Positions 1 to 63,535 of a DNA stretch of 64,000 nucleotides are shown piece by piece. A program made the translations under genes and the position numbers. A model generated the notes under the pieces. It was given only the letters and a program-made list of their open reading frames with translations, had not been told where the DNA came from and made no database searches. Positions within the stretch are counted from its first letter, which is position 1, and the number at the start of each line of letters is the position of its first letter. The stretch is from Adineta vaga (Eukaryota > Animalia > Rotifera): assembly GCA_021613535.1 (NCBI GenBank), contig CP075497.1, forward strand, positions 13,082,001 to 13,146,000, given 5' to 3'.

Positions 1-2423
1 TTTTTTTTAAATCAACTATCGTCTAACTATATTTCTATCTAAATATATCATGACTGCATACTCATATATAAAGAAAAGTATAGATCCCTATATCACTGTA
101 TAGTGTCAAACGATATTATAAAAATATAAATTTGTACGACAGAAGTAATTTTATTAATGATTTTCTTTTCTCATACGATGCTATAAAACAATACTCGTTC
201 GAACAAAACGAGTAAATTATCACATAACTATATCACTTGGGTGACCACAAAAAAAAGATATGTGAATTAAAATAATAAACTTCTGTATGATTACATTCTC
301 TTCAATAATACTATAAAGAACATTCATTTATCTTAAATAAGTAAAACCTCATGCGATTATATTCTGCTCGTAAATAGCATAAAAGTAGTTCATTCGCATC
401 AAATGAATAAACTTTCATAACATTATACTCTATTCGAGAATGGCATAAAAATAATTCATTGTGACGGATTCCATAAATTGCCACATGAATATATTCTTCT
501 TGCAGATACTATAAGACAATTCACTTAAATAAGCTAAACAAAGTTTTATATACTTATATTCTCTTCAACACCAGTATAGAAGAAATATTTACTTAAAAAA
601 AATAAATCAAAATTCATTTTACCATGTTCTTTTCATCAATAATAAAAATACTTTGTTTACATGAAATAAATACACTTCCACATCATTATGTTCTTTCCAA
701 ACGTACCATATAATAATCCACATCAGTATGAACAAAATAAAATCCTGAATTATTATATTATCTCTGACGGTGCTGCAAAGAAAACCCGTTTCAATAATGA
801 ATAACATTACAAACGAATGTATTGTCCTCGAAGACGCTATTAAAACATTTATTTAAAGTAAATACAAAACTTCCATATTATCAAATTCTCTCCAACCACA
901 ACCTACAAAAATATCCATTTAAATGGAATAAATACAACTTCGTATTATCATCTTCTATCGATGAATACCATCAAATAATGCTTATCAATAACAAGTAAAT
1001 GAAAGGAAATATCATCGCATCGTATCCAACGATACTACGGGAAACAAAACCGTTTGAGTGCAGAAAATAAAGTTTGGTACAATAAAATCAACTTTTCCAA
1101 TAGCGTACAACTATTAATTTTAATCCAATAACTAATATTTTCTCCAACTATACTCTCTCCAACGACTCTAGAAAAGAAGCATTATTCGAACTCAATAAAG
1201 AAACCTAAGACAAAACTTCAATACTATCAACCTTCTGCATCATACTACTGAAATACTTATTCCAAATCATTATATGTAAACATATCATTCGAACTATACC
1301 AATTTCAAGGTAGATTACTCCCATAACGTATGAAACAACATCTATACAACAAATGCAAGTTATCGATTTCGTCAGCACATTTGATCTTACACTCAAATAA
1401 CCGATTCATATTCCACGCACTGTTTAACAAATACGGAAAAAGTGAGGGATCTATGTATCCACTGATGCATGTTTCGCCCTACCCCACACTGAGCGATATG
1501 AATAGTTGAATTCAAGTTTCAAGTATTACACATGTGCATATGGAGAGAAAAAATATGTGTTTGAATATAAGAAGCATTCTTTTTCAAACTATATCTGAAA
1601 AACCCAATCCGTAGTCAAATCGTTAAAATTTTTGTGAAACCAATCGATTTTCTGTATGAATTGCTTTTAGCCATTTCGGTTTATCTCCAGCTGTCATTTT
1701 GATTCATCTAACAGGATTTTTCTATGAATCAGTTTAATTGAAGAAACAAAAACAAATAATATTATGTGCGGAATAGGGTGTGGGTGAAGATGTCCTATAT
1801 TGACTCACACTCACCCTTGATGTGCCGTTCTGTGACGGAATGTCATGGCCACTGTCAATAGATCAATATGAGTTAGACTCTGGATGCAGTCCTACATGTT
1901 TCATGTTGAAAAGTAGATATTTTTCTGTAAAGCCTTCAGTAATATCCCCAAAAATGTCCGTTCGAATGTTACAAATATATTACATTAATATATTCGTTTG
2001 CTTAATTTTGCTCATGTGTATATATAGACTTTCGGTTATGTCAGCAAGCGACAGCGTTCTTTCTAGTTTTCTATTGGCGGATTAGCGAATCCAACAAGAA
2101 AGAAGAAAAATCACACATGGTCAGAACTACATTTTATGTTTGGTACGTATTAACTTTAGACACAAACGTCTTGTTTTTACTAGAAAATTTAATTGATATT
2201 TAATACATTTTCGAGAAACAAATTAATAATCTATCGTGGATGTGGGTATGTTTCATTGACCATTAGATCCAAACCCATCCTCACTGGTCTAGTTATCGGA
2301 TAGTTTTGAAGTTTCGAGTGAGTCGTACATAGAATCTATTTATTGTTCTCATCTAAAGATATTCTCAACAAAATATGTTATTCTTCAGTGGTGTCACTTT
2401 TTTGTCTGTGTTTTAGATTGAAA

Positions 2424-3518
2424 ATGTCAGAGACACTGCACAGTGGAATTGAGTTCTTCTCCGTTGAACTATGGCGAGAAGTTTTTGATTATTTCAATTC
2501 AAATGATTTATGGTACTCATTTCGTGATTTGAATAAAAGAATTAATGAAATCATTGATCAGACAATGTTACATTTAGATTTTGCAAAGCATGAGAATTAT
2601 GATTATTATATGAAAAATATTTTACCATCAATAAATGGGGCTAATATTCGATCATTAAAATTACAAAACTTCAATGAAATAAAACATTTTTTCTCTATCT
2701 ATTCCCTTAATTCATTGATTCAACTTCGTTTACTATCATTAACTTTTATGAATTCTTTTAATGATAATTCATTTCAATTCTGGAATCAACTTTCATCTTT
2801 GAAATATTTACAATCATTGAAAATTATGTTTCGAGGCTATTCTGGGTGCGGTTATTGTATTGAAGAAAAGGAATATATTATTCGTTCGATATTTAATAAA
2901 GATTTTTGTCCCTTATTAAGATCTTTTAGTATCGAAGCTTGTAGTAGAAGAAGTTGGAAGTCCACAATTCCTTCGTTAATACCAACAACTAAAGCAACAC
3001 ATATGGAATATATGTCGATTGACTCGTTGGCTTTTATTGATTTAATTAAATTACTTCCTGCTCTACAAAATATTAAATCATTTCGCTCGGATCATGAATT
3101 AACTTATGATAATAAACAGCAGCAAAACATGACAATTCCAATGCCATTGCTGTGTAAGTGTATTCGACTGCATATACACTTATCAGAAGATATGACATTT
3201 GAACACATCGAATATTTATTAAAACATACACCAAATTTACAAGATTTATGTTTGCGGAGTTGGCATCATTTACTTAGTGCAAATAAATGGGAATCAATAC
3301 TATCAGTTCAATGTCCGAAATTGTTAAAACTTGAATTAATATGTACTGGACCCATTGGAGATGATTATTTTCATCAAGCATCAGATAATTTTCAACAAGA
3401 GTGTGCAATAATACCATTTTGGACTGAACGAAATGTTACAATTACAGATGATGAAGATCATTCGGCTCCTGATTATCGTTCTAATATTATAATTCGATTT
3501 AATATCGAAAAAAAGTGA
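2424..3518 (+). CDS. F-box/LRR protein (bdelloid-type)
   Basis: N-terminal F-box-like IEFFSVELWREVFDYFNSNDLWYSFRDLNKRINEII followed by LxxLxxLxL repeats. ATG at 2424 follows a ttttag acceptor; the end may continue via a GTGAGT donor near 3514. Confidence 0.8.
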   Translation: MSETLHSGIEFFSVELWREVFDYFNSNDLWYSFRDLNKRINEIIDQTMLHLDFAKHENYDYYMKNILPSINGANIRSLKLQNFNEIKHFFSIYSLNSLIQLRLLSLTFMNSFNDNSFQFWNQLSSLKYLQSLKIMFRGYSGCGYCIEEKEYIIRSIFNKDFCPLLRSFSIEACSRRSWKSTIPSLIPTTKATHMEYMSIDSLAFIDLIKLLPALQNIKSFRSDHELTYDNKQQQNMTIPMPLLCKCIRLHIHLSEDMTFEHIEYLLKHTPNLQDLCLRSWHHLLSANKWESILSVQCPKLLKLELICTGPIGDDYFHQASDNFQQECAIIPFWTERNVTITDDEDHSAPDYRSNIIIRFNIEKK

Positions 3519-4186
3519 GTTTCATGCAGAAAGTATTGTGAAGACAGAATCGAAAAATCAGGAGTGTCGTTTATTTAGCCAAGGAGATATATCATGGTCA
3601 AGATATTTTTGTCTGTTTTCTCTCCTTCTCACGACACATAGTTACCACAGTCATGTGTTCACTCATATTATTCGTATTCTTTAATGACGGAACTCACATC
3701 TCGTCAATTTAATACAGATTATAGACAAAATAATTAGTTTAACGATCTACAGCATCTCATAGATTGTTTTCGAAAGGTGCGATGTGGTAAAAAGATGAGC
3801 CTCATAGTGCTATCAATTCGGAGCTGCGAAGACTTTTTTATATGATATAACCAGGTATACTTCGAACCATAAAAAAAATAGTGCCTCCAAACAACTTCAA
3901 ATATGTTCTTATTTTTCTTCTTATTTTAGTTAAAACAACTAAATGAATAGAACGAAACAGTCAAATGACGTCCACACAACGTATGGAACCCTATAAACGA
4001 ACATTATTTTCCCACTGCTATTACTCTAAACTATCTTACTTTTTGTTAAAAGTTCGTCTTTCGTTTCTTTTGTTGTACTTTATTATCAAGCAAGCTATCA
4101 AATATCAGAAAACAAATACAAAGCAAGAAGAGAAAAAGTCAAGGGCGAAACGACTGACTTTGTGACTTAAGTCACTTAAATGACTT

Positions 4187-4292
4187 GGGTGTGGGTGTGG
4201 GTGTGGGTGTGGGTGTGGTGGTGTGGGTGTGGGTGCAGAAGAGAGACATCCTCACCACACCCACACCCACACCCACACCCACCCTCAAGATG
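4187..4292. repeat. Inverted telomeric-repeat unit (GGGTGT)n-spacer-(ACACCC)n-CTCAAGATG
   Basis: Read directly from sequence; 14-nt spacer CAGAAGAGAGACAT. Confidence 0.95.
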
Positions 4293-4564
4293 TTGAAGTG
4301 TCGAACGAAACTCTTTATCCATATGATACAGATTCGTATTTAAAATAGAAATAAGAAAAAACTTACTTTGCTAATTTCACATATAGATTTTGTTTAGCTT
4401 TGTGTTGATCAAATGTTATAACTGTTTATTTAGGTTATTTTTCTCAGCTATTTGGATGAGCGTGCGCAAACATCTCGTCACACCCTCAAAATAAATTTTA
4501 TCATTTCTGAAATTAACAAAAAACTTTGAGATTTTCATGCAGAGTTCATGTCAATCAATTCTTA

Positions 4565-6072
4565 TTAAATCGAAACGATTCGATTATTTCCATGATCTGC
4601 AACATACAGATTTCCTTGCAAATCAAATGATAAACCAGTAGGATAATTCAATTGATTTGAAGTCTTTCCTCGTCCATTTCCTCCAACAATAATTGAACCT
4701 TCTCCATCTCCTCCACACCATCCCATTATTCGGTGATTGATACAATCTGCCACATAGATCTGATTGCATTCATCAACAAATAATCCTTGCGGTTGATCCA
4801 ATTGATTGAGATTGTTTCCTTGATCATTTCCACCAGCAATTAATTTTCCTTCTTTGTTGTCATTATAAATCTTCTTTAAGTTCCATCTTCTTACTTCATT
4901 TTCCTCATCATCAGAAACATAAAGATATCCGTCTTGATCCATTGTTAAACTCCAACAACAAATATTTTGAATGAGAATCTCTTGTTTTTGATCGTGTGAC
5001 CATCGCACTACTCGTTTATTTGAATGATCAGCAATGATGATGGAATGATTTTCTTGATCAACAATCACACCTGTTGGATGATTAATTTGATCCATTCGAT
5101 TTCTCCAACCATTGCCATCTGCAATGATTTGTCGTTGTTTTTCTCCACATTTCCATTGAACAATACGATTATTTTCCCAATCCGAAATGAAAACTGTTTT
5201 ATTTTTATCAACAAAGATTCCATACGGATTATAGAATTGATTTAGTTGATTTCCACATCTATTTCCTCCTGCAAGTATCGTTCCATATTGTTGAAATTTG
5301 CTTTCTAAACGAAGAAAAGCACTTAATTTGAGAAAATTTCCTAAATTTTTGTTTTCTTGTTAAATTTGATAAATGTTCAGTTGATGATGGAATTGAAATT
5401 GCTATGAAAAGGTGAAACAAATGTAAGATAATGTGATGCTGTTTCTCCTAAATGAATAATTGTTAAATTTTCTCCAGTTTCCATTGTACTAACAATTTGA
5501 AAGTAAGTTCCTAGAAGAAGAATAATTTCATTTTCATCTTGAAAATATGAATGAGATCGAATTAATTTTCCATTTTGACATTCAATGTTAAATATTGTTT
5601 GTTGATTATTTATCCCAAGTAATTCTTTCGTAAATTCAATATTTCCTGTACATGAACTGATTCCCCACCAGAACAGATTTTCATTATCATATTCATCAAC
5701 TAAATTACTACGAGCAGCACGATAAATAATTCCTTTAAATGAAGGAAGTTTAAATAAAGCAGTACAAAATAATTTTAGAAAAAAGAAACCATAAAACTAA
5801 TTGATTTCGATTTTTGATCGAAGATTTTCATTTAACAGAGTAGATAAACTTTTATGTGGGCGAGGCCATTGCATTGTATATAAATTAATTGAAGTTGATT
5901 CATCTTGTGTTAAACCATCATTTGGTTTTTGACAATTTAATTTTGCAATTTCAACTATTGAATCATAGTTATGAATAAATGATTTGACTGGTTTAATTGC
6001 TTCTTCTAATGATACAAGTGGAATTAATATTCGATTTAGTTCTTGATCAGCATCAAGAAATCGTTCCGTCAT
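4565..6072 (-). pseudogene. ADP-ribosyltransferase + NHL-repeat protein, disrupted
   Basis: MTERFLDAD...GLTQDESTSINLYTMQW continues past TAG 5797 as LKLFCTALFKLPSFKGIIYRAA..WWGISSC..HSYFQDENEIILL (R-S-ExE-type ART). An NHL exon follows (AGGNRCGNQLNQFYNPYGIFVD; YVADHGNNRIV). Compensating frameshifts and a stop lie near 5780-5815. Confidence 0.8.
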
Positions 6073-7003
6073 TTTGAGTATTTTTTCGATCGTTTTGGTA
6101 TGTAAATAAAATTGTTCGACAAAGATTTTCTTCTTTTTCTTTTGTTTGATTCAATAACAAAAGAAAGAAGAATTCTTTCGTTTTTTTATTTCCCGAGTAT
6201 TTTGATTACATCCTTATAACTCTTTCAATAAAAAACTCACATTTGAATTGTATTGTCTCATCATCTGCAATCTTTCAAAACTTCTCATACAAAATAAATG
6301 ATTACAGTCTCAAGTTACATGGTTCACTAAATTTATTTATAAAAAACATGATTTTATTATTCTCTAGTTTTTTCCCAGCTCGATTTCTAAACAATCGTAG
6401 ATTGACAGACACAAATATAAAAGAGAAGAATGAGTAATGTACCCGTTATATTTTTCTATTTCTTTCGTCTGTCAACTTCTTTCAGTTTTTCCCTGTTGGA
6501 GAATAACTTTGCATTGTAACTCATAAGAAGTGAGTCAGTGGGGATTTTTGTGCGAAAAAACACAGTTGCTTACAGATAAAATAAATTGTTCGCTTACTAT
6601 AAATGTTATCAGAATTTTTTCCAAAAACTAATAATCAAAATGAAAGACAAAATACAAGATAGTGAAATATCTCTCACTCCTGCGATATCTGAGTCTGTGG
6701 ACAAGTCAATAATACACATGGTATCTCTTCAATGCATTAACGATAACAATCGTGTTATAGCGGCTAATCATAGTGGATTGGTGATAGAAAATTCAACTAA
6801 ATCAACTAAACAGAATGCTCAATGGTCAATTACTTATTATAATTATCTATGGATTTTGATTAATCATGCTAATTCAAGTAGTCTTATTTTCAATACAAGA
6901 AACAAGCATATTAGCGAACCATTGAAAGTGAATGATGGTCATCGTCGCTTGTTACTTCGAGTATCTTCCAAAACTTGTAAAGAAAACCAATTTGCGAGTT
7001 AAT

Positions 7004-11535: not shown

Positions 11536-11653
11536 GGGTGTGGGTGTGGATGTTGGTGGGTGTGGGTGTGGGTGTGAGTGTGGAGATACGTGATGAGAAT
11601 ATGTCACACCCACACTCACCGCCACCCACCCACACCCACACCCTCACCCTCAA
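11536..11653. repeat. Inverted telomeric-repeat unit
   Basis: G arm, spacer AGATACGTGATGAGAATATGT, C arm ending CCCTCAA. Confidence 0.95.
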
Positions 11654-12005
11654 CTGTTCAGATTTGAAAAAAAAAGTTAAAAATAATTTTTTCTCAAATC
11701 AAAAATTCGTTCAAAATGACGAATTTCCACTTCTATATATACATGTGCGTCGCCATTATTCAATTACAAACCTCCATATTGGAGAGTTGCTATTGGTACG
11801 CGTGCGGTACGTGAGTCACCGACGGTACGCGTACGGCATGCATACCGTACGCGTACTTAGAGCGAACCTATCGACATGGGTAGAAAAGAAAAGTCGATCG
11901 AGTCTGTAAACAATTTTAGGAATAAAAATATGGCGATGAAAAAAAGCTATACTTCCTTTATCACAGAGAGACGGCATCTTTTCACATAAGATATTTCTAT
12001 TTGCC

Positions 12006-18136: not shown

Positions 18137-18455
18137 TGTGGGTGTGGGTGTGGGTGGGTGGGTGTGGGTGCGGAAGAAGGTTTAAAACACCCACACCCAC
18201 ACCCTCACACACACCCTCAAGAGGGTGAGGGTGTAGGTATTTCTTCTTCTTTCAAATCCACAGCGACATCCACCCACACCCACCCTCAGGTTTTGTGGAG
18301 AGAATTCCGAAAAAGCTTGGTCATAAAGAACAGATATTCTAAAAAGCCAGGTTATGGATGGGATTGATGTGTAAATATGCTACCCACACCCACCCCTCAA
18401 GAAAGTCTAGGATAACAGGTGATCAAGAGCTAATGGTGTGAATGTGGGTGAGGAT
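18137..18455. repeat. Cluster of three inverted telomeric-repeat units plus a lone arm
   Basis: Units at about 18137-18221, 18221-18288 and 18351-18401, two ending CCCTCAAG. Confidence 0.9.
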
Positions 18456-20842: not shown

Positions 20843-20905
20843 CATCTGAGGGTGTGGGTGTATGTGTATCTTCTCTATACCAACACCTTCACCTACACAC
20901 TCTCA
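20843..20905. repeat. Inverted telomeric-repeat unit
   Basis: CATCTGAGGGTGTGGGTGT...CACCTACACACTCTCA. Confidence 0.8.
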
Positions 20906-21893: not shown

Positions 21894-22011
21894 GTGTGGG
21901 TGTTTTTATTATCCATCCACACCCATACCCACACCCAAACCCACATCCACACTCACACCCACACCCACACCCACACCCACACCCACACCCACACCCACCC
22001 TCACCCTCAAG
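21894..22011. repeat. Inverted telomeric-repeat unit with a long C arm
   Basis: GTGTGGGTGT, spacer, then (CACACC)n ending CCCTCACCCTCAAG. Confidence 0.95.
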
Positions 22012-23203
22012 AAATATTAAATAAGAGAAAAAGAAAACAAAAATGTATTCCACATCAATCTTGTTTTATTTCCTTTGTAATTAATTATCATCATCTCTAT
22101 AATTTCGTATTTTTTTTACTCAACTCGTTAAACTGAGTAATCAGTGGGAAAAAACTAATTACTAAACAATCAGTATCGCGAGCGCATGATATTCCACTTA
22201 CATTGAATTTCATTCTTCATTTCATTTTTTTCTCTGTAAATAAAATAATTAACGTTGAGTTAACTTTCAATCTAACAGAAAAGAATTGTCGTTGATAATT
22301 TAATAAAAATTTATTGTGTCAGTTGTTTAGTTCAGATGGAATTTGTAATCATTTAGATTTTTTTCATATCGAAATAATATATGGAAAAATAGACAGATAT
22401 TTTTCTTTAGAAAATATTTCTGTCGATACTTTTATTTTGATATGGCAAAAAGATTTTCTATTGAAAATGAATCTATGAAATTATCGAAGGAGAATATAAT
22501 GATGAAAGTCTCTTCAGTTTTTCAAGAAAAAGAAAATAATGAGTTTTTTGTTTCTTTAAAATAAAACGAAGAAAGATATTTTGAGAACATTAATTAGAAT
22601 TCAGTGTATAGAGTAAATCATTTTTCTTCATATAGTAAAACAAGAGTTGATCAATCATTTTCAGATTTATCTTAATCAATTCGAATTAATTGTTAACTGA
22701 ATATTTAAACATTCAGTTATCGACAAACCGTTTGATATATTCAGATTCGGAATGAATCGTAAGTATTCTTTTGAATTCTTTTCGTTGCATATCAACTTTG
22801 TTTACAAGAGCAGTTTTTTTGTCAACAAGTTAATCTCTGATAAACTGTGTTTATCGACTGTTGTATGGATGTTGAAAAACACAATATCTAAGAATGCTTT
22901 TCAATGGACTCAAAAATGAAATTGATTTAGCTTATAATGTTTATTTGTAGAAAATGTTATTCTGAGAAAGAGCAAAAGTAGGTACAGATCTAAGTGCCAA
23001 TTAAGCTGAGACGTAGAGGTCTTGAAGAAAATTTTATTGCAAAATCTTATTTTTCTCTTAAGATTATGTCGTCGGAACTTGATCTAAAACTTGTCCCAAA
23101 TGAATCGCTCAATCAAACTGACTTGAAAATGAAACTTTAGACAATCTAGACATATTACTGTCGATATAAAAATGTTTCAAAATATATACGTTGTACATTT
23201 AGT

Positions 23204-35140: not shown

Positions 35141-35855
35141 AGCTTGTATTTATTTGAGCAATAAAAATATTGGAATGAGCAATAATTAAAACATGATTTA
35201 GCAGTAACTTCCGAGCAATAAGAAAACATTGTTTGAGCAATTTCATAATATTAAATGAACAATAAATAGTTTATTATATAAGAATATTAATTTCATATTT
35301 AAGCAACAAAAAAAGGAAAAAAACTACGTTATTTTTCTTCACAATTAGCAAGAAACAAAAGGAAAATGGAATATATAACTAATCATTGAATCAATGAAAC
35401 TTTTTTTGCTTTTGCTGGTCTACCTTTTTTTCTTTTTGTACCAATTTCTACATTTTTTGCCTCAGGTGGAGGTTTGCAATATTTTAATCTAATGGACATA
35501 CCAATGGTGTGCTTTCAAATATAGTTTTTCATGAATGATGGACAGGTGCAGGGTGTGGATGTGGGTGTCTTTGTTATATTCAGACCCACCCTTACCCTCA
35601 CACCCACACCTACACCCTCATCCTCAATATTACTTGAAGGTTGCATTTCCATGTCATTTTCAGAATCAGACATATAGTCTGCTACACGTTTCGATTGAGC
35701 CATTTGTATTAAATGAACGGATTATTATTGCCCTTTTTATACACGCATTGTTTTATTTAAATTAATTATTGGTCATTTCATCTAATTATCCCTCATTCAT
35801 TATATATATATATATTGCTCATTCAATATATTTAGTGCTCAATTAAATATAAGTC
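35141..35855 (-). mobile_element. Internally deleted MULE (Mutator-like) element
   Basis: About 45-bp imperfect TIRs and a 9-bp TSD TTAAGAAAA (35132-35140, 35856-35864). Minus strand keeps a putative transposase N-terminus (MAQSKRVADYMSDSEND) and a SWIM finger/AT-hook C-terminus (CTCPSFMKNYI*KHTIG..KRKKGRPAKAKK). Confidence 0.85.
35551..35627. repeat. Inverted telomeric-repeat unit at a MULE deletion junction
   Basis: GGGTGTGGATGTGGGTGT, 15-nt spacer CTTTGTTATATTCAG, ACCC...CCCTCATCCTCAA. Confidence 0.9.
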
Positions 35856-45800: not shown

Positions 45801-48400
45801 TCGGCTCATTTGCAATTTCTTTCTGGTTTATGTGAACTTTCTACTGAATTAATTCAAAACTCTGTCAATCAATTTCTATCGTCAGTACTTGTCACTCGAC
45901 GACTTCTATCAGAAAAAGATTTTCGCACACGTCTTCATGTACAGATTGAACAAAGCAAATCCAATGGTCCTACTACATTTAGTAATCTTTTCTTCTTAAT
46001 TCGAAGTTTATATTATGGAAATAATCTAATGTCCACTTATGGAACAAATTTTCAGTATTTTAAACTTTCAGAATCATTTGAGAATGTTGCATCGATTCGA
46101 ACTATGATTTATGACAATAATTGTAGCTGTGGATTGCATTCAAATTGTACAAGTCAAGCAAGTTTTCTCATAACAAATTCTTCTCATCCTATTGAAATCA
46201 AAGGTTTGAAAATCGGATGCACACCAAGTGAATCATTTCTTGCATCAACTCTCGAATGTTTCTATGATATTTCATGTATTAATCTTATTCAAGAATATAC
46301 AAATTATACAAACAAAGTAAATGTTACAACTATTCCTATTCCTCTTCTCCCGACAATGATCAATCAATCATCGATCAATACTACTATAGCTGAACTTGTC
46401 AACAATCTGTTCATTGAAAATTGGACAACGACAATGAATTATTCATCCTATTTTGAACAATGTTCTCCTGTGTTGTGTTCATATACCTATTTTCAAGAAT
46501 TCAATTCTTTGTACACGATTACTCTTCTGTTTGGTTTACAAGGTGGTCTCACCATCGTTCTCAAATGGATTTCTCCTAAAATAATTCAATATTTAACAAT
46601 AGTATATCAATATCGTCAGAAGAGAAAGAGACGTGTTCAACCTGTTTCCTCTGTCGAAATGATGTCTACCGAGAGTGTTGCTGCAGTTGATTCCACATTG
46701 ATATCTACTAGCACAACATCTCTGTATGTCAATCTTTATTTTCATTTTATTTCTAATGTACAATTGTTTTCTATAGAACGAATTTTCCAGTACGATGTTC
46801 TTTCAAACTTATTTTGAAATGTCTATTACTATTTATTTTATTGACAAGTCTCATTATATTTTCTATTTACTTTCTACGACAAAGAAATAATCAAGATGAT
46901 CTAACAAGTATGAGAATTGTTGAGCATCTTGAGGGTGTGGGTGTGGGTGTTCACAGAAGTTTTCTTTTGAGGAAACCTAAACATATCTTGAAACTCTTTA
47001 CTATAGCTCTCTGGATGAATACGACTATCAATGCAAGTTCAAATACAACAACAACTACTACGGAAAACAAAACAACACCGACTGCAACTATGACAACCTG
47101 TTTTTCAACGAGTGCGTAGATTAAAAATACTTCTTTTCTCGCTTATCATCTTTCTAGTCAATGGGAGAACCAAATCGAAAGTTAACGAGGAAATATTATA
47201 ATTAGACATCATTCTTTTCCCAAATGTATTTAACTTGAACAATGAAAATAACGTCGTTGTTTTTTCTTCTTCTTAGCATCAAGTTGTCAATTAAATTTTC
47301 AATCGATATCAATCGATGTACCTTGCGAACCGGAGTCAAACGTTGTTAGCGATTTCAACGGTGATAGTCGATTAGATATCGCTTTCTGTTGTACTCAAGA
47401 TAATAGCGTCAATATTCTGCTTGGTGATGACAATACAACGTTCAGAATACTGATGAAACATTTTTTAACTGATCGTATAGATCCAGAAGGCATTACCATT
47501 GGTGACTTTGACAATGACAGTAAACTGGATGTTGCCGTTGTTAATCAGCGGAACGATGGTGTGGTTGTAGTCTTTGGCAACGGTGACGGAAGCTTCACAG
47601 CATTAGTAGAGCTTTCAACAAACAAGGATATTACTCAAATTAGTACTACTATTGCTGATTTCAACAATGACACTTATTTGGATATTGCGAGTATTAGTGT
47701 GAAAAGCGTTAGTGTATTTCTTGGAAATGGTGACAGAACGTTTGCAATACCAATGTCATTTTCGATTGGAACGGGTATTCCGTCATCATCACTTGCCGTC
47801 GGTGCCTTCAACAGTGACAAATACTTAGACATAGCTTTTGTGGATTTTTACAAACATCAAATTGGCCTATTATTTGGATATGGTAATGGATCTTTTGCAG
47901 CAAGAAAGACGTTCTTTATCTTAGGTGCTATGTCTCCACTTGAAATGGATATCGGTGATATGAATGGCGACACGTATCTAGACGTTGTTATCTCTAATTG
48001 GCTACAGAACACTATTATCATGATGCACGGATCCGAAGATGGTACTTTGGGTGCACAGAAGAATTGTATCCTAAGTGGTGAATCTATATATCACACAACA
48101 ATTGCTGTTACTGATGTCAATGGTGATGGTCACATGGACGTCGTTCTCGGTAGAATAAGGCCACACGGTGTAATTGTGTTACTTGGACAAGGAAATGGAC
48201 GTTTTGAAGAGCAAACCATATTTACGACTGCTGAATGGAACGATCTACCATTGGAAATTACTATTGGGGATTTAAATAATGATGGTTGTCAAGATATAAT
48301 CGGTACGAATAGCTTTACAACTATTGTGCATATTCTTTTGAACACATGTCAATGCTGCGTGCCAAAGATTCTCGAGAGAACTTCTTTTGTACGTCAATGA
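39877..48400 (+). CDS. Multi-exon membrane protein: three divergent TM-ectodomain-TM modules + extra TM + Thr-rich stalk + FG-GAP repeat domain (at least 2 frameshifts)
   Basis: ATG 39877 (MNFKALLHWLYEW). Module cores LSCPC (about 40290), LTCPC (about 43290) and LECPC (about 45415), each with a STL(E/D)C motif and a C.P..C.Y-type motif before a TM. TM at 46814-46880, NTTTTTTENKTTPT stalk, FG-GAP repeats (GDFDNDSKLD, GDMNGDTYLD, DVNGDGHMD) at 47277-48400. Frame problems near 42530 and 42895. Confidence 0.75.
46925..46950 (+). repeat. Single telomeric arm with the shared terminus, intronic
   Basis: CATCTTGAGGGTGTGGGTGTGGGTGT. Confidence 0.85.
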
Positions 48401-49440: not shown

Positions 49441-49491
49441 CGATCAGAGGCAATATTAATAATTAGAAGACTTTCTACTTTTATTTCAAAT

Positions 49492-49525
49492 ACACACCCA
49501 CCCACACCCACACCCACACCCTCAA
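49492..49525 (-). repeat. Single telomeric arm downstream of the Athena RT fragment
   Basis: ACACACCCACCCACACCCACACCCACACCCTCAA. Confidence 0.85.
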
Positions 49526-50429
49526 CTTTCATCATTAACACAAGTCAAAATAAGTTTTATGGCGAATTTCTTAGCAACGATTTGTTATACCAATTCTGTT
49601 ATTTGATTTTATATTTATACTCTAACTGATCAAAAATTTCGTGTCGAATTCAAACGTTGTATTCAATTTGGATTAAATATTATTTTGACAGTGAGTGATA
49701 TAATGCATCGTTTGCCTTTGAGAACTCGAAAAGTATTAAATCAGCATATGAATACAAACACGAGAAAAAATACTGTGCGTCCTATCTAACAATTATAACT
49801 ATTTTATAGACAATCTTTTTTTCTGATGTTTTCATCAATACTCATCGGTGTTAATAAGAGATGCATTTGTGTGTGCATGTGTGCAACTCGATGCGATAGT
49901 TGAAGCATTCTGTGATCGTAATTTTGACCTTGTTCAAAGATTTTATTAAATAGCTGATGTTGTAAAAATAGTTCCTATTATAATGATTTCATTAACAATC
50001 AGAAATTCAGTTTTTCTCTCACATTATCATGATTTGAGACATTTTTACATACAAAATGACAAGTAGAAGATATCCATTTGGGTTTTTTCCAACTTATTAT
50101 TACTTTTGATTACTTTTATCTTAAATCGATAGTTTTAGTGTGCATTTTTTATTATTCATTTGAAGAAATCCTTCTCATTCAATAATGCGATAAGAAAAAT
50201 CGAGTAATCATGTTTATAGACCTATAAACGTTATTTTTTCTTTCATTTTTCTTTCTTTATCTTTGATATATTTTGGATGTGGATGTGCTTGTCTTATACA
50301 ATAGTATATTCACAGCTTTAACTCATATGTGAACATCATCTGCATCTTAATAATCTATCACCATCTATACTCAGATTATAACTTTGATTAATTGCTTTAA
50401 TTTTTGTTCTAGATTCTCAACTATTCGGT

Positions 50430-53254: not shown

Positions 53255-53306
53255 GAGTATGGGTGTGTGTGGGTGTGGCTCAGACTATACGCTTAATCCA
53301 CACCCA
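53255..53306. repeat. Inverted telomeric-repeat unit at the GST truncation point
   Basis: G arm, spacer CTCAGACTATACGCTTAAT, CCACACCCA. Confidence 0.8.
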
Positions 53307-53404
53307 TGCTACACTTTTACTCTTACTCTGCTTACATTGTTGTTTTATTTTATTTAAGAAAAAGAAAATGTTTATTCATTCGACAGACATGTCCTCAGTT
53401 TTGA

Positions 53405-56222: not shown

Positions 56223-56810
56223 TTTGTTTTGTTGAAGATAAACTTGATATATGTATTTCTAATGCTATGTTGTTCAAGTGATACTTTCGAATGTTAATCA
56301 AACATTCATGAGAATCAGCTTTTTCTTCAATAAACTTCATAAGATACTTGAAATATTATTATTTCTGTTTCTTTTTCATCAGAAGAAAATAAATTACAAA
56401 AAAAAACTGAAAAGACCTTAGAGGACATTCTCTACAATACGATAATGCAAATCATGTCAAGTGAGTATCAAACAAGAATAGTAATGGGCTCAGCTCTATC
56501 TCATGTAGTTTGTACTTGGAAGTTGCTTTTTTTTCGTTTTTATAATAATGAAATAGCTTTCTCAATATGGATGGTTATAGACATAAAAGAAGTTTCTCGT
56601 TGTTAGGTGCTCAGAAAGGGTGTGGGTGTTAGATGTAATATTAACACCTACACCATCAAGATTCAGACTTGTATATTACGTAGCTAAATGATGATTTTGC
56701 TTATTTAGGGCTTGAGAGTCATATTGTTAGCCTTATGATAACATAGTGATAAACTCCTCGCCCTTGAAAATTTTATTTCATAAAATATAAAATCAATATA
56801 AGATGTGTGT

Positions 56811-57528
56811 TCAGTTTTCAATACAGTAAACATGGGCCATACGAGGAAATTCTGATCTCTTAATTGTATATGCGACATTAACTTTGAATTGAACAAAGAA
56901 TGGTAATGATTCAAATTTACTAACTGCATCCATACTCAAAGCATTTAACGTCCCATACACAATCAATTGAAGAGAAATATGTTTTAATTTGTTATGTGAA
57001 CCCAACATAAGTGTCCACCAATATGGATCCAGTAAACTTCTATCATTTCGATACCAGGTACATTCACAAAAGTATGTACGAAGATTGGGACAACATGGTA
57101 ACAGCAATTCAATGAATTTACTGATACACATATTGAAATAATCTTGAACTCCTCCTAAACTGAGTTTTTTCATGTTTGGAAGACACATTCTGATTTGAGT
57201 AGATAATAGAGCAGATGACACTGTAGCATCGTCATCATTTGGATAAACATGAAGTTTTGCTGAAAATGAACGGAGTTGAGGACATTGTTCCAAAATTCGA
57301 ATGGCCAATACATAATGAACCATACTCACATCTATATGGAGAAGTGATGGAAAATAAAGTGTACATATATTGTCAACGAGTGGCAATTCTGCATAAAATA
57401 AAGTTCCTTGTAAATACAAACGTTGAAGTAAAGGACAATTTAGACGAAAGAAATTCATTGTAGGTGGATCAACACATGTACGATCGTTCCAGTGACCACT
57501 AATGCTGAGCGAAATAAGGATCGAGAAA
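56811..57528 (-). CDS. LRR protein C-terminal portion (F-box/LRR family), 5' part absent
   Basis: CPLLQRLYL, FPSLLHIDV, CPQLRSF, LPNMKKLSL, CPNLRT; the frame stays open up to the telomeric arm at 57529. Confidence 0.6.
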
Positions 57529-58820
57529 GGGTGTGGGTGCGGGTGAGAGTGTGTATATTTCTGCTATCGAACAGCCCACATCTATATCCGCACCCAAATA
57601 CTTTATTCGACGTAGTTTTTGACGCTGATTTTGAATATGTAATTCATTTTGTTCTCAAACCAATAATAGCAATAAAAATCGATCAGTACCAAGTCATTTT
57701 TTATTCGTTCTGGCTAGTATTACAAAAGAAATCCGGTTTTTCACAACGACAAAATCTGAGAAAAATAAATAGGTACTATTGTAGCCCACGTTCTGGCGGT
57801 TCGAATGAGATATGACAGTTGATTCTATCTCTTGAAATAAAAAACAACATAGACTTACACGATTCTTCACGGATATGTGCTTTTTCAGCATATACGGATA
57901 TGAATGTTAGACAGGACTTTTTCAAGCTTTTTTGGTTTTCAATCTGATAAAATAGCATTATCCCGATTCAGTTTTTCATGCTGTTTCAGAATATGGTGTT
58001 TAAGGAACCCTTTAATATGATAAATGATATTAAATTTTAGCAGTTTTTGTAAAGAAAGTAAGATATATGACGTTTTCAGTCATTGAACGTATTTAGCGAT
58101 TTTCGCAGCCAAAGATCGATCAAATCTAAACAATTTATATATATTCGTGATCAGCGTTTCATTCTCTATCAAACCATATAGAAACAAACGAGAAAAACAA
58201 ATTCCACTGAAATTTTGCATTGTTGGTACCTTATACTGAACGTTCAATTGACATAAGAAACCCTCAAGGGTTTTACATTAAAGTTGCTAAGCTTTTAAGG
58301 ATTCGCGAACTAGTTATTGGTTTTGGATAACTAGCACGAAACCATGTCTGGTTTGGTTTAAAATATTCAGAACTTTTTGAAAACTGACGAACCATCAATG
58401 GTTTCGTGAACCGCATAGAGAACTTTCAGAACTTTCAGATGGTTTTTGTTGTCAACTACCGAACCTTCTGGACCCTGCTGAACTTGAAATAGTTCGGCAA
58501 ATCAAGGACGAAACGTTTTTAATTTTTCTGAACTTAAAATCGATTGGTGGAAGCATAGAGAACCTTTTAGGTTCGGTAAAACATCAAATTTTTTTACAGT
58601 GTAATAGTTATGCATATAGTGATAACAAATTATGTACTCATTACTATGACTCAATCCGATCGTACTTCTTTCAACTTTATCTTTACTTTTACGTCGGATG
58701 TTTCTTTTTATGATAGTCACTCATGCTTGTCCATACTTGTTTTTTCATCTGTCATAGAAAACGAAGAGATGAAATATTTACATTTTTGTACGGTCGGAAG
58801 TAGACGAAACAAGAAAACAA

Positions 58821-59646
58821 ATGAATACAAGACGTGTATCAATTGATCAGAATGAAGTAGATTTTCTTCTGTCTGATGATAATACATGTAATTCAAATAT
58901 TGAATCAACAAACCTAAACAATCTCAATTTTCCATGGGCATTAATTAACGTAATTAAGATATTTAAGAAAATTTGGCAACAAAGATCAAAGGAATTTTTC
59001 CAGCAACAATCAAAGTTTAATAAACATTTGCTATTTCCATATTATCTTCAACTTTTAGTGGTATTCCTCATTTCCATTGTCTTTGTTCCATATGGTCTCG
59101 AATCTCGATATGACGGTTATTATAGATATCCTCTGTTATTTACTTTTTTTCTTATTCAAGGTTTATTTGGTCTTTTTATTGTCTTAATTCATACGTGCTC
59201 AATTTTATTTTGGTAAATAAGTTTTGCATTTTATATTAATCAATCGATTTGAATTTATTCGAGTTTTTTCTAGTTGGACACCGTCAAAGATAGCAAATTT
59301 GTCGTTTGAACAGCGATTTATTATTCAAATTCTCATGGCTTCTGCTAATCTGATTACCATTTTTTGTATCATCTGGCTTTTTATTGGTCATGTTTGGGTC
59401 ATATTAACAATGAAAGAGTATACCACAGGAAACAACAATAATCACCTGAGAGCAAGCATTTTATTCAGCATTATAGCATTTATAGTTCAATATGCTGTCG
59501 GTATTTGGTGCCTTTATTCTTGGATTCAAAATAATTCACAAATTCTACATCGAACAAACGAATATATTAAATCTTCCAATAGAAAAGAAACAACCATACA
59601 TGAAAAAGTTGCTAATCGAAAAATTGATGTTTTGATCCATATTTAA
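58821..59646 (+). CDS. Multi-pass membrane protein of unknown function (two exons)
   Basis: ORFs 58821-59212 and 59274-59646 separated by GTAAAT...TAG; four hydrophobic segments. Confidence 0.6.
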
Positions 59647-61247
59647 TTTATCAATTTTTTTAAAAAAAAACTTTTGTTTATTCATCACAAACTAATCCAA
59701 TTAGTTAGTTTTATTAGATAGAAACTTATTCATATAGATTTTTTTTAACATGTTCAAGTGTAAAAGAAACTTTTATTTATTATTTCTTCTTTGATCAAAT
59801 CGTATTTTAATTACATTTATTTTTATTGTCATACCAGTTGAAGATATGTCTCGATAATAAATTTCTTCTTCTCTCTAACTACAATCTGCTCATTCCATGA
59901 TTATAGTTTCGATGCATATTATTGGATATCTGAGAATATTCTTAGAAACTGTCGTTCCTAACCACGTAATAATACATTTGACTGTAATGATTTGACCATT
60001 TTGAGTAATAATGTAAGATTATTTTTGTCGAATAAAATTTTCGCACGAGAAACTTTTAAAATCAATAGAAAGTTAGCGAAAAGTTGTTTATTAACATCGA
60101 TGAATATGAATGTGTCTCAACAGCGAAGGAGTGGAGCAGATAATGGCGTTGCCAGGGAAAGGCAAACGAGTAACTGTCAACTCCATGTTGAGGCTTGTCT
60201 ACTAAACTTTCAGCATTTTGAAGGGGTGGGTGTGGGTATCAGTGAATACAAGAGACCCACACACACACACTCACACCATACTGTCATCCTCACCTTTACA
60301 TATGAAGCTAACAGAAAGATCGCCGAATTTCCAAGTCATTCTAGACCAATGAACATTATTTATTATAAATATTATCTTACAGGACAAAAAGTAGACAGTT
60401 ATATTGCTTTTTTTAAACATATTAACAATATCCACCACCACCCAAAGCACCTAGTTCTGCATCAAGAAACGGATGAGACATTGTGTTGATCTTTGTTTGA
60501 TAATCGTCGAATGAAATAATAAAAATGTTATTAACGAGAAACGTTACTCATTGTATTTATATATTTATTGCGCGTATGAGATGAGTATATAAAAAGAACA
60601 TCACAAAACGCCCATTAACTCATTCTCTCTTTGACGTCACGAACGTATACGTCATATCGACTGTTTCTAAAGTTTACCATTGGCGTATTTTACTTTTGAT
60701 ACATAGTACATTCTCAACTTGGAAAAGATCCGTATATTTTTTTACTGTTGAGGAAGATATCAGTTGTTATCGTTTTGTCGTATGCCATACATCATTCACC
60801 TCGTTTGGCGTTTGTTGCTGAAACAAAGGACCTTGAGACACTCGAATACCATTTAGTATCAACTGTGCCTCTTGTGTTCAATCGAAACTATTCTATAATC
60901 CTAGATAACACGCTTTTTCATCCTGTTAATAATGATCAATTCAAATATTCAATGTCTTATTAATTGAACTCGGGCGAAGTTTTTCCTCATTTGTCGTTTT
61001 TGATTTTTCGATTAAATATCTTTATTATACAACTTGAATGAATTTTAAATTGCCTTATCAAGAAAATGTGGGTGCGGGAGAGGGTGAGATTAATGTGTAA
61101 ATATACTATCCTCACCCACACTCTCAAGATGAATGATAATTGTTGATAAAACTGATCTCTATGTTGTATTTTGGTTCATCTACATTTATTATTAAATAAA
61201 AATATAGTTAAATTTTTCACTAAATTAATCAATAAAAAATGAATATC

Positions 61248-61520
61248 TTATTTCTCAGGATGAAATAAATAGTGTACAAAGAGTTTAGCAAATTGATATG
61301 TGGGACTATTCGCTAGAGGATTTAAATCTACATATTCATAGTTATAATGAACTGGTTTGGGCGCAGAAGCAATTGCATGTGCTGAGTGATGTTGATGAAC
61401 ATAACCACGAGCATTTCTATGATATGGTTCGTTATTGTGATTGATATGATTGTTCATTCGATTATGAACTTGCTGTAAATGCTGAGCAGTTCTAGTATGC
61501 ATTCCAGTTGGGTTGCTCAT
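61248..61520 (-). CDS. Small His/Asn-rich hypothetical protein
   Basis: ATG in an AAAATG context, 90-aa low-complexity ORF, AATAAA-like AT-rich 3' region. Confidence 0.4.
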   Translation of the reverse strand: MSNPTGMHTRTAQHLQQVHNRMNNHINHNNEPYHRNARGYVHQHHSAHAIASAPKPVHYNYEYVDLNPLANSPTYQFAKLFVHYLFHPEK

Positions 61521-62175
61521 TTTGAATGTTGTTATGAAGAAAAATAACCAATATAGTGAATGTATTTTTTTCTCATGATAGAAAGTTTCTGTATTATATA
61601 TAAATATTTCTTGTGAAAATCATTGATGTGAAGCAGCGCTGAAGCATGAAAAGAAAAATACATACGAATGATTTCATCAATTTTTTACTAGTTAGTTCTC
61701 AACAAAAAAAGTATTCATTACGTTTGTGAACAATTGGAAAAAGGCAACAACAATGATGATGTTAACTGGTTCTTTTCATATTGATACTTTGTTTAAGTTT
61801 ATTCAAATATAATAATGAGAGTAAAGGGTATATGCAGTCTTGCGAACAATAACTGATGAATTCTATCAAGAAATAGAAAATATATATTTCAAGATTGTAC
61901 ATTTAAATATAACAATAGCAATGATCTACATTTACTTTCTCCAATAAAAACGAATAAATAGTACACCGAAGCAAAAAGAAAATGCAGCTTCTAATTTAAA
62001 ATCAGATTCTATCGAAATAACACTGTATCAAATGGGCGGACAAGGCTTGAATAGTGTTCTTTTATATAAAAAACATGTGTCTTGACTACAATATATCTAA
62101 AAGTACATTGAACAAAAAGAGATAGATAATACATATCGAATAACGTCTATGTTATTTTCAACCCATACTTTGACA

Positions 62176-62497
62176 TCAATCCAACGACCCTTTTTTTGCA
62201 GCAACACCACCACCACAACAACAATCAAGGCAAATTAGAACACTTATGACAATGAGAACATAATGCCACCATTGTAATCCGTCACTATCGTTACTTCTTA
62301 GATTAGTTTTGGCGCGTTGTAAGTCGTCTGTAGAAAGCGATGCCGATTCAATAGATCTGGCTGTATTGAAAGTATTTTTCGAAGAAATCGAGTTTTCAGA
62401 AGGATATACCACCGTACTGTCATTATCTTCCTTCTCCTCGTTGATACTATGTTTTTCCGATGCTGATAACGATGAATTCGAAAAAACTTTTTTGTTA
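62176..62497 (-). CDS. 3' part of a single-pass membrane protein (Ser-rich ectodomain, TM, Cys cluster)
   Basis: GLQWWHYVLIVISVLICLDCCCGGG; the upstream frame runs into a telomeric arm at 62498. Confidence 0.5.
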
Positions 62498-63535
62498 GGG
62501 TGTGGGTGAGATAAGAGTGAAGGTGAGAGCGGGTAAAAATAACAACGATACCCGCACCCACACCTTTCGTAGACAAATTTAAATATTTTGAAGGAAGTAT
62601 ATTTGGTGGTGAGAAGAGCGAGATTCTTCGACTCGAAAAAGTACAAAGTATTTTCGCATCATTAGTAGTTCAAGTTCTAACAGATCATGTGAAAAAAAAG
62701 CTGTTTACTTGAAGTTTGTATTGCCTACACCTGACTTGCTGAAAGTCCCTTTAATCTCTTCTTTAAAATGACGTAATAAAATATGCGTATTAGAAAAATC
62801 AGTACCTATAATTCACTCAATCGTCATGCAATCAATGAAGAGGATTATCATAAATATTGTTTTCAAGTACTTTTTATTTTATTCATCTTAAAAGATTTAA
62901 TGATGCATACAAAATAAAAATGCCTATGGTTTTATTACTTATTGTTTGATGAATCGATGGAAAAAATTGTTAATTTGCAAGTCTAATCAACATAGTTAGC
63001 AAATCTTATTTAAGAACAGTTCTTCATTTTATACTGTCTTTATAATCTTTACGATACATTCGTTTCTTGTAATACCTGCTGATTATACACTTGTGAGATG
63101 ATATTTTTTTCAATTCTAGTTCTAATTTTGGCTCCAGCAAAGATTCTTGGTCCGAGCATGTGTTCTGAGTATGTTTCTCTTTTGATTGTAGTAGCCGTAT
63201 TAACAATACGGGCTTTTTATAGGAATACAGTAGACTCAAACGTGGGAGTTAAAACTAGTCTAGTTATAACGTGTACATTGCATTTGAAGTCCAAGGTTAA
63301 CTGAGTCTTTGATAGTTCTCCAATGGTTGTTTCTAATTAATTTAGTCACCTACTAACACGTTCTAAGAGCTTGAAATTACATTTATAGATTTTTTCAACA
63401 AACATAAATATCAAATAACGATACTTAATCGGATCATTTTAGATAATATAAGAAAGAAATTTATCAAAATATGTTCCTTAACACTACTTATCTATCAATG
63501 ATGTTATTTTCAATTTATTTAATTTTCTTGATCAG

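Follow-up and report, generated by a model that had tools for sequence, protein, structure and literature searches.

Why does the DNA between the genes of a bdelloid rotifer carry, many times over, telomeric repeats arranged head-to-head around a short loop? This question is raised by a window of Adineta vaga chromosome 6 (the whole 64-kb stretch of DNA analysed here, ~750 kb from the chromosome end), in which we count 17 units composed of a G-rich arm, a loop and a C-rich arm. No description of such hairpin units was found in the searchable literature. They bear on the open question of how bdelloids cap and rebuild broken chromosomes, and bdelloid subtelomeres are the place where foreign genes, transposons and rearrangements accumulate. 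Transient neotelomeres have reportedly been proposed in 2026 for the repair of broken chromosomes in these animals.

A preliminary description of the locus considered each unit to be an independent scar or patch of DNA repair, in which both break ends had been tailed de novo with telomeric repeats and rejoined through an unrelated short linker. Our results are best read in another way: the units belong to a repeat family of bdelloids whose members are very short palindromes of 40-130 bp. Instead of being one-off repair scars, they are copies of a repeated element that comprises several families, occurs genome-wide and is located between genes and where rearranged DNA begins or ends.

Results and discussion

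Telomeric hairpin units in the window and in the genome

By a seed-based count, the window contains 13 strict G→C pairs, while 200 first-order Markov simulations average 0.055 and never exceed 2. DNA hairpin folding is predicted for 14 of the 14 tested units, with z from -1.9 to -6.6 (Table 1). Each of the sites listed previously, about 15 in number, is real and has a short loop between a G-rich telomeric arm and a C-rich arm, and the claim that arm lengths vary independently holds. What the list overlooked is a long member, a perfect 22-nt inverted repeat (46929-46950 versus 49504-49525) enclosing 2.55 kb with an FG-GAP gene and a reverse transcriptase (RT)-like fragment. The reported cluster of three units at 18.1-18.4 kb is present, with the correction that its third unit is 18349-18402, whose G-arm is degenerate; units 2236 and 20843 are decayed copies. 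The layout of the module in Adineta is TCTTGAGGG(TGTGGG)n - family-specific loop of 15-35 nt - (CCCACA)nCCCTCAAGA.

Table 1. Hairpin units and the long member in the window (window coordinates; z, folding score)
Position	Strand	Feature	z
1776..1816	.	hairpin unit, short arms, without canonical termini	-2.4
2236..2283	.	decayed hairpin unit, mutated arms	
4187..4290	.	hairpin unit, G-arm 49 nt, C-arm 27 nt, right terminus CCCTCAAGA	-6.6
11536..11655	.	hairpin unit ending on the right in CCCTCAAC; arms split	-5.4
18138..18222	.	hairpin unit, right terminus CCCTCAAGA abuts next unit (18223)	
18223..18289	.	hairpin unit, G-arm begins directly at end of terminus of unit 18138..18222; fam3-like loop	
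18349..18402	.	fam4 hairpin unit, degenerate G-arm, right terminus CCCTCAAGA	
20843..20905	.	decayed hairpin unit, left end CATCTGAGGG	
21896..22012	.	hairpin unit, G-arm 7 nt, C-arm ~110 nt, right terminus CCCTCAAGA	
35551..35628	.	hairpin unit within 710-bp MULE-derived nonautonomous element (35134-35844), at joint of missing transposase core	
46926..46950	+	long member, left terminus (ATCTTGAGGG + G repeats)	
49493..49527	+	long member, right terminus (C repeats + CCCTCAAC)	
53261..53305	.	fam2 hairpin unit	
56618..56662	.	fam1 hairpin unit with short variant of the loop; CCATCAAGA at right end	-4.7
57529..57595	.	hairpin unit, left border of 4.6-kb segmental duplication; paralog G-arm 69 nt	
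60224..60300	.	hairpin unit, ~30 nt past 3' end of minus-strand transcript	
61068..61130	.	fam4 hairpin unit, right terminus CTCTCAAGA, ~30 nt past 3' end of minus-strand transcript	
62498..62564	.	hairpin unit, inner stem GCGGGTA/TACCCGC	-4.7

The G-then-C geometry noticed in the window is near-exclusive genome-wide: the strict pattern GGGTGTGGGTG-N5-35-CACCCACACCC gives 386 matches in the G→C order versus 3 in the C→G order, some sites being counted twice, in two registers. The left chromosome end of C4, which is a true telomere, is built of CCCACA repeats with CCCTCA variants, so that both hexamers are telomeric in A. vaga, and the comparison supports the telomeric identity ascribed to the arms. 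All six chromosomes carry the loop families described below, for the most part in subtelomeric DNA rich in genes, and C1 has zero sites between 2.2 and 11.5 Mb. Units are also found in Adineta steineri, with termini as in A. vaga, and in Rotaria sordida, where they are devoid of the terminus.

Loops form recurrent families

The spacers between the arms had been regarded as mostly unrelated. Instead, they form recurrent families, present on all chromosomes within unrelated flanks. The fam1 loop (GTTAGATAGATGTARTAC) has 75 matches at ~50 loci on all six contigs (control 0), the fam2 loop (TCAGGCTATACTCTTAA) is present in at least 33 copies with unrelated flanks (control 0), and the fam4 loop gives 88 matches versus 1 in the control. 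Even for the seemingly unique loops of units 57529 and 60224, related loops occur on other chromosomes, and identical small units recur at many loci. Inverted termini TCTTGAGGGTGTGGG.../...CCCACACCCTCAAGA are common to fam1, fam2 and fam4 copies. Templated loop families together with shared termini imply that whole modules are copied and that the arms are not products of two independent telomerase additions. The copies show that the module is transferred whole to new places and that, after arrival, its arms gain or lose hexamers and decay by point mutation. A collapse of the spacers into a few families had been named beforehand as an outcome in favour of an ordinary miniature inverted repeat transposable element (MITE), and collapse into families is what we observe.

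Units at borders of rearranged segments

The suggested link of the units to DNA breakage and rejoining is borne out by their position exactly at the ends of homology between paralogs and at a deletion joint. At positions 67514, 77047 and 89410 paralog homology stops exactly at a unit; at 57529/80344 it stops inside the G-arm. One unit in A. steineri divides an 82% block from a 95% block. In the window, unit 35551 marks the deletion joint of the MULE derivative (35134-35844). The two flanks of the unit are non-contiguous in the other copy in four paralog comparisons, the five comparisons having been started from homology borders, which biases the sample towards joints. Relative to the unit, segment borders fall at three different points (the outer G end, the inner G-arm and the outer C end); there is thus no fixed crossover point.

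The paralog of unit 57529 carries a fresh, perfect G-arm against unrelated DNA (69 nt versus 17 nt between the two paralogs), and the arms of A. steineri paralogs differ by one hexamer. Many copies are decayed by point mutation, with no compensatory upkeep of pairing. Neither an allelic empty site nor a de novo event was seen: DNA contigs of two runs retain five of five units in the 56.6-62.6 kb region, and all differences in these contigs match the paralogous copy.

Proposed copying of the module into DNA ends

We see about an even chance that the palindromic module is copied into DNA ends or breaks and that its telomeric arms later provide homology for telomerase-tailed ends. New copies would arise mainly at free DNA ends, without a staggered-cut transposase. 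A 3' end, often with a telomerase-added G tail, would anneal to a template at its C-rich arm and be extended across loop and arm. Either another copy, used during repair synthesis, or a hairpin RNA copied by a reverse transcriptase of the Athena type may act as the template; the extended product would then be joined to the other DNA end. Copying at free ends would account for the lack of fixed target site duplications (TSDs), for the independent arm lengths and for the units at joints of rearranged, duplicated or deleted segments. As the arms are telomeric, telomerase-tailed ends could later anneal to those of resident units, which would lead to duplications starting inside the G-arm. Several results speak against this reading: no hairpin transcript was seen; no hammerhead or Athena 3' end adjoins the units in 264 kb; and the loss of left and right termini is symmetric, giving no hint of the 5' truncation that one-strand reverse transcription should leave.

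Copying of the module at breaks would, if real, represent a new way of repeat spread, and the units a record of past breakage. The units are abundant, precisely definable and present between nearly every gene pair in subtelomeric-type regions; since they mark exact borders of duplicated or deleted segments, they offer a concrete signature to be sought at new repair junctions. More speculatively, and rather improbably in our opinion, the hairpins would be working joints of a cap-and-rejoin system, in which telomerase-tailed ends are re-attached via the templated hairpin module, gene-sized segments (including the foreign FG-GAP gene at 46.9-49.5 kb) are captured, duplicated and shuffled, and a cut in the loop gives two capped ends again.

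Termini and flanks

Non-telomeric palindromic terminus TCTTGAGGG...CCCTCAAGA closes 33 of 94 arms (35%), with junctions TCTTGA/GGG... on the left and ...CCC/TCAAGA on the right. Of the units scored, 5 have it on both ends, 23 on one end and 19 on neither, a distribution compatible with independent loss. In 264 kb we count 15 occurrences of CCTCAAGA and 13 of TCTTGAGG, versus 2.2 expected. The terminus TCTTGAGGG is absent at the telomerase-type junctions examined, which begin directly with GGGTG. Outside the unit ends, T is found at -1 in ~90% and A at -2 in ~67% of cases, on both sides. A rolling-circle-type DNA transposon would likewise be expected to have a defined terminus, a TC at the 5' end and an A...T preference in its flanks. 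The match to Helitron-like elements is incomplete: 5' TC is present and an A/T flank is found at about two thirds of ends, but the 3' end is AAGA and not CTRR.

These features could point to a nonautonomous DNA transposon, either a MITE/foldback or a tiny Helitron-like element, whose enzyme, supplied in trans, would recognise the TCTTGAGGGTGTGGG termini and insert the element between A and T without duplication. The location at rearrangement borders would then be a secondary effect of the fragility and recombinogenic nature of palindromes and dispersed repeats. Inverted termini of ~20 nt shared by several loop families and conserved in A. steineri, as well as the flanking nucleotides, argue for this possibility. 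The same holds for two larger relatives, one of 338 bp, which has inverted arms of ~100 bp and ends in the same termini as the hairpin units, and the long member (46926-49527) with its perfect inverted termini. We nevertheless consider such a transposon somewhat unlikely. A fixed-length TSD, the other outcome previously named in favour of a MITE, was not found, in agreement with the earlier failure to see a consistent one, and complete copies show the A...T flank preference only; an ordinary MITE is therefore not established either. The sole filled/empty paralog pair has a 7-bp repeat and 17 extra nucleotides (filler DNA) and misses both termini. Also unfavourable are the 3' AAGA, the absence of an autonomous partner in 344 kb and of any transposase near the units, the non-contiguous flanks and the Rotaria units devoid of the terminus. 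Should the units be an ordinary transposon, it would still be unusual in using the host telomere repeat as inverted ends, and these ends would probably seed rearrangements.

Cis-elements, repair scars and introns

Roughly one unit is found per intergenic spacer in the window, and the same spacing is seen in five consecutive intergenic spacers of the A. steineri locus L040. This regularity, two units ~30 nt past poly(A) sites and the units at borders of moved segments could indicate maintained cis-elements: telomere-seed pairs at preferred break sites, gene-cassette recombination sites, or terminators or insulators between packed genes. By geometry alone, cutting the loop would yield two sides that each end in telomere repeats of the correct orientation. 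Point mutation of many copies without compensatory maintenance, borders at varied unit positions and the lack of a recombinase tied to the units make this function improbable, and intergenic placement is expected of any tolerated insertion in a gene-dense genome.

Independent repair scars are very unlikely. They would agree with the G-then-C geometry, with the location at joints, and with arms that vary independently in length and are no more complementary to their own partners than to arms of other units. Neotelomeres and Athena fragments are reported at A. vaga breakpoints (PMC13564844). Contrary to scars, however, the units have templated loops instead of unrelated linkers, recur in identical form and carry a terminus that telomerase-type junctions lack, and their arm architecture is consistent within families (the fam2 C-arm has 2-3 hexamers in 12 of 12 assessable copies). 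The telomeric arms, the geometry and the connection with breakage thus survive from the scar interpretation, while two independent additions around an unrelated linker do not. Loop families contradict it for most units, and it could apply just to founder events or truly unique loops. Scarcely credible are introns or introner-type elements with their own GT...AG (AGG/GTGTGG...CTCAAG/AT). GT and AG are suitably placed in the termini, but RNA contigs over 56.6-62.6 kb (two RNA-type runs, contigs only, hence limited sampling) contain one ordinary 61-nt intron and a joint across 0 of 5 units, and transcribed pieces end outside the units.

Comparison with known systems

MITEs and foldback elements resemble the units in being short, multi-copy and near genes, in having longer relatives with the same ends, and in terminal inverted repeats common to families with differing interiors. 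The hairpin units differ in the lack of a fixed-length TSD and of an autonomous partner in 344 kb, in stems made of host telomere repeat that vary by hexamers, and in the many copies at rearrangement joints. Bacterial REP elements and integron attC sites are prokaryotic and served by known HUH or tyrosine recombinases. They too are short, imperfectly palindromic intergenic sequences, conserved at the ends and variable in the centre, with a frequency of about one per gene; the hairpin units, however, have no tied recombinase, and the borders of moved segments do not lie at one fixed position.

Two eukaryotic systems employ telomere-like inverted repeats. TBE1 and Tel-1 of ciliates are telomere-bearing transposons with C-rich repeats at the element 5' ends and an encoded transposase; their repeats are inverted as in the units but face the opposite way, and the transposase is a further difference. 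SFE of the nematode Oscheius tipulae is the palindromic break motif of programmed DNA elimination, where a central cut generates two telomere seeds. It shares with the hairpin units both the telomere-like inverted repeat inside chromosomes and its geometry, but we know of no evidence for DNA elimination in bdelloids.

Bdelloids themselves have the telomere-attaching Athena/Terminon retroelements (Gladyshev and Arkhipova 2007; Arkhipova et al. 2017, via PMC6431247 and PMC3846280). Like the units, they have C-rich reverse-complement telomeric repeats, including the TCACCC variant, that pair with G-rich ends; they inhabit subtelomeres, are capped by telomerase when truncated and use free DNA ends without an endonuclease. 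In Athena arrays all repeats point the same way and a hammerhead ribozyme adjoins the C repeats, whereas the units are non-coding, with opposed repeats and no ribozyme. Neotelomere "scars" and short interstitial telomeric stretches of A. vaga subtelomeres (PMC13564844; PMC2861651; PMC8494291) similarly place telomeric repeats inside chromosomes at breakpoints, with subtelomeric enrichment. In the passages searched they are described as repeat stretches, with no mention of a head-to-head module, conserved termini or loop families. Our scan of 344 kb for the hammerhead motif gave a match only at the C4 end, and an Rfam search gave nothing; one canonical Athena 3' junction, used for comparison, lies at 2.7 kb of C4.

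Hairpin units of telomeric repeats and their genomic setting

The genome assembly (G000) comprises 100.8 Mb in six contigs with 32% G+C. The window (G000:C6:13082001-13146000) belongs to contig C6 of 13,893,210 bases, its right edge being about 750 kb short of the right end of this contig. All window sites listed in the preliminary description indeed have a G-rich telomeric arm (G-arm) and a C-rich arm (C-arm) with a short loop between them. By seed count, the window contains 13 strict G-then-C pairs, against 0.055 in 200 Markov simulations, and each of 14 units folded as single-stranded DNA forms a hairpin (z from -1.9 to -6.6). The predicted bias in orientation holds in a scan of the whole genome, where the strict pattern has 386 matches and the reversed C-then-G pattern only 3. 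The 264 kb around the window contain 47 G-then-C pairs versus 7 C-then-G pairs, the latter mostly representing just two adjacent units. Most of the strong arms seemingly devoid of a partner have one that is decayed by point mutation, and the true density of units is therefore about one per 4 kb.

The units inhabit subtelomeric and intergenic DNA. On contig C1, strict sites occupy two zones, 0.13-2.2 Mb and the part past 11.5 Mb, and are lacking in the stretch between them, and units of the first loop family (fam1) are likewise biased to chromosome ends on C3. Rfam at gathering threshold gave no match in the window and 220 kb of its flanks. Both TGTGGG and TGAGGG, assumed at the outset to be telomeric, are telomeric here: the left end of contig C4 is a terminal CCCACA array with CCCTCA variants.

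Loop families and the conserved terminus

Loops of the units had been regarded as mostly unrelated spacers. Pattern listings across the genome, from which all family counts are taken, show that they fall into recurrent families, and that copies of the same family have unrelated flanks. The fam1 loop GTTAGATAGATGTARTAC between arms has 75 matches, distributed over all six contigs (control 0), and the fam2 loop TCAGGCTATACTCTTAA is present in 33 copies despite restrictive anchors (control 0). For the fam4 loop GATTGATGWGTAAATATRCYA, represented in the window by units 18349 and 61068, there are 88 matches versus 1 in the control. A fourth family, with the purine-rich loop GAGTGAAGAAGATATAC, recurs both in the genome pattern listing and in the flanks of the window, and even for units 57529 and 60224, whose loops seemed unique, related loops exist on other chromosomes. 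The architecture of fam2 is reproducible: one arm has three to four hexamers, and the opposite arm has two to three in every assessable copy (12 of 12). Hairpin modules and their families exist, and the modules get copied.

Outside the telomeric repeats, the palindrome continues as a conserved terminus, which reads TCTTGAGGG... at the left end and ...CCCTCAAGA at the right end and is common to fam1, fam2 and fam4. The 264 kb contain 15 occurrences of CCTCAAGA and 13 of TCTTGAGG, versus 2.2 expected, nearly all at arm ends. The terminus is kept on 33 of 94 arms, and arms with and without it do not differ in length. It is found at both ends of 5 units, at one end of 23 and at neither end of 19, which fits independent loss on the left and right. 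Outside CTTGAGG, the tally of unit ends gave T at about 90% of ends, then A at about two thirds and then C at about a third, the left and right sides being symmetric. The tallied ends showed no direct repeat beyond these flanking preferences, and a fixed target duplication is absent. An ATG behind TCAAG is unlikely to open a coding sequence: in 10 of 11 cases the ORF behind it spans 8-38 codons.

Clear telomerase-type junctions open directly with GGGTG, without TCTTGA. They include the cap at +77.0 kb (distances are from the window start), which closes a truncated 450-bp repeat, a perfect 69-nt array at +80.3 kb, and the arrays adjoining the Athena hammerhead at the C4 end. TCTTGA as the default start of telomerase addition was provisionally rejected, as long perfect arrays at clear healing junctions open in this direct way.

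Longer members and relatives

Unit-type termini are not confined to the short hairpins. The perfect inverted termini of a long member flank 2.55 kb with an FG-GAP gene and a reverse transcriptase (RT)-like fragment; a candidate degenerate tRNA in this member was left unconfirmed, ARAGORN having returned no tRNA. A foldback element past the window ends in the hairpin terminus as well. ARAGORN found no tRNA in it either, and about ten more copies of its 140-bp core were observed at 80-86% identity. Unit 35551 is located within a MULE derivative, where the catalytic core of the MULE transposase is missing; the derivative has since spread together with its unit, and at least ten further copies, on five chromosomes and with 89-93% identity, all carry the internal telomeric hairpin.

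Features of the window, its flanks and other loci (L002 and L003, flanking DNA; L027, left end of C4)
Feature	Position	Description
710-bp non-autonomous MULE derivative	35134-35844	N-terminal and SWIM-end coding remnants, minus strand
MULE derivative inverted ends	roughly 35143-35185 and 35813-35856	~45 bp
Inverted termini of the long member	46929-46950 and 49504-49525	perfect, 22 nt
RT-like fragment of the long member	49140-49480	contains stop codons; motif ...FDVTDRYTMIP...
338-bp foldback element	L003:1894-2223 (+85.9 kb)	22 kb past the window; ~100-bp inverted arms
Segmental duplication	55090-62178 and L002:2598-L003:1092 (+76.6 to +85.1 kb)	~22.9 kb apart, 94-97% identical
4.6-kb duplication	57529-62178 and +80.4-85.1 kb	
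Athena-type 3' junctions	L027:2541-2760 and 5502-5580	canonical; G-repeat array, then reverse complement of the hammerhead core (CTGATGAG...CGAAAC); opposite orientation to the terminal C-rich telomere 2.5 kb off
TPR-ADP-ribosyltransferase gene	12006-14471	
MACPF/SNTX-like genes	14792-16828 and 50430-52478	opposite orientation; proteins 55% identical
Tandem modules	25502-34269	three of ~1.15 kb, 91-92% identical; ORFs 409-431 aa long, without Pfam match
RVT_1 reverse-transcriptase fragment	30220-31110	minus strand
NHL-repeat gene segments	4510-5336 and 9788-10678	mutually inverted
Palindrome in A. ricciae	L029:9601-9832	perfect centre; 116-nt arms, 98% complementary; just upstream of a MACPF-like gene
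Tandem repeat	L031:8165-8450	roughly 50 bp, ACGCGT-rich; adjoins an assembly gap

Units at rearrangement borders

Comparison of the 264 kb with itself revealed a handful of recent duplications. In five comparisons, four in the 264 kb and one in A. steineri, a unit lies exactly at the end of homology. At +67.5 kb, a duplicated segment ends at the left edge of the unit; past that edge its DNA bears no relation to the two other copies. Homology ends at the first base of the G-arm at +77.0 kb and begins one base past TCAAG at +89.4 kb. The 4.6-kb duplication starts inside a G-arm, whose length differs between the copies (17 nt and 69 nt); the DNA left of the arm is unrelated. In A. steineri, one unit divides a block of 82% identity from a block of 95% identity. 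Because arms cover only about 1% of the DNA, exact coincidence at four of about a dozen borders is not due to chance. Units coincide with rearrangement borders in this sample, which is biased in that homology borders were the starting point of the comparisons, and arms change on the scale of hexamers. A 450-bp piece in the segmental duplication is bounded in the order G-arm, piece, G-arm and resembles a retro-copy that was truncated at the 5' end, attached to a telomere and capped.

A single pair, +95.4 kb versus +91.0 kb, suggests that a unit was gained or lost; it displays a 7-bp direct repeat and 17 extra bases, and no canonical termini. A BLAST search for empty paralogous sites with window positions 1-20000 against the genome returned gene families only, no match spanning any unit.

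Transcripts and DNA runs

Assembled contigs of public runs were inspected for the region 56.6-62.6 kb. Two RNA-type runs contain a single intron, of the ordinary GT..AG type and 61 nt long, and none of the five units is bridged by a joint, leaving the idea that units are introns unsupported. The ends of two transcribed pieces, at 60332 and 61158, are each about 30 nt away from a unit, and TTTATT, which reads AATAAA on the minus strand, is located about 30 nt inward of either end. From these two cases we infer poly(A) sites of genes on the minus strand; units may be situated immediately beyond such sites. All five units are kept in DNA runs. G>A at 57590 and a 6-nt insertion behind 57593 are identical to the paralog at +80.4 kb and hence represent cross-mapping rather than allelic variation.

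Origin and spread of the units

We propose that new copies of the modules would be made at free DNA ends, the 3' end pairing with the C-rich arm of a template and then being extended. The same mode of attachment to G-rich overhangs has been proposed for Athena/Terminon RNAs (PMC6431247). The arms would later act as homology for telomerase-tailed ends, and annealing of such ends to arms would give rise to duplications starting inside the G-arm. Neotelomeres and Athena fragments at breakpoints have been reported from A. vaga lines (PMC13564844).

The main rival explanation, less probable but still plausible, is a conventional DNA transposon with these termini and an A|T target; the T and A preferences outside the shared terminus speak for it, the absence of a fixed target duplication against it. 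The preliminary description had interpreted the units as scars or patches of a repair route in which both broken ends receive telomeric repeats, from telomerase or an Athena-type RT, and are rejoined through a short linker. Two independent telomerase additions with a random linker are opposed by the loop families, the shared terminus and the terminus-free telomerase-type junctions. Loop families, conserved terminus and longer members argue for copied modules and disfavour the scar model, which at most may still account for how founder copies arose. Complementarity of a unit's own arms showed no excess over arms of other units (median rank 0.52), a measure unable to separate the models because all arms are telomere-like anyway.

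Reports on A. vaga describe neotelomere scars and, for subtelomeres, "short stretches of telomeric repeats" (PMC13564844; PMC2861651; PMC8494291). We found no description of the hairpin module in the searched portions of the literature, and an earlier account is possible, notably in the key Athena/Terminon work.

Other bdelloids

Loci of other species were reached via homologous TPR and MACPF proteins and form a small sample. The same kind of unit is present in A. steineri, with two units in 23 kb at one locus and five to six in 23 kb at another; these have the TCTTGAGGG/CCCTCAAGA termini and loop families of their own. In 23 kb of Rotaria sordida there are three units, which lack the TCTTGA-type terminus. 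No unit was seen in A. ricciae (about 78 kb from loci that overlap in part), in 23 kb of Rotaria sp. Silwood2 or in one further 23-kb contig, samples too small to claim absence. The A. ricciae sample covers the ortholog of window 12-17 kb, with the TPR protein 80% identical and the MACPF gene adjoining. Small as it is, the whole sample shows that units of this class predate A. vaga and that there is turnover of the loop families.

The TPR-ADP-ribosyltransferase gene and the first MACPF gene of the window form an orthologous pair in A. ricciae, with a MULE transposase gene between them. The NHL-repeat segments of the window are members of a subtelomeric family that numbers about 40 copies with 68-84% identity.
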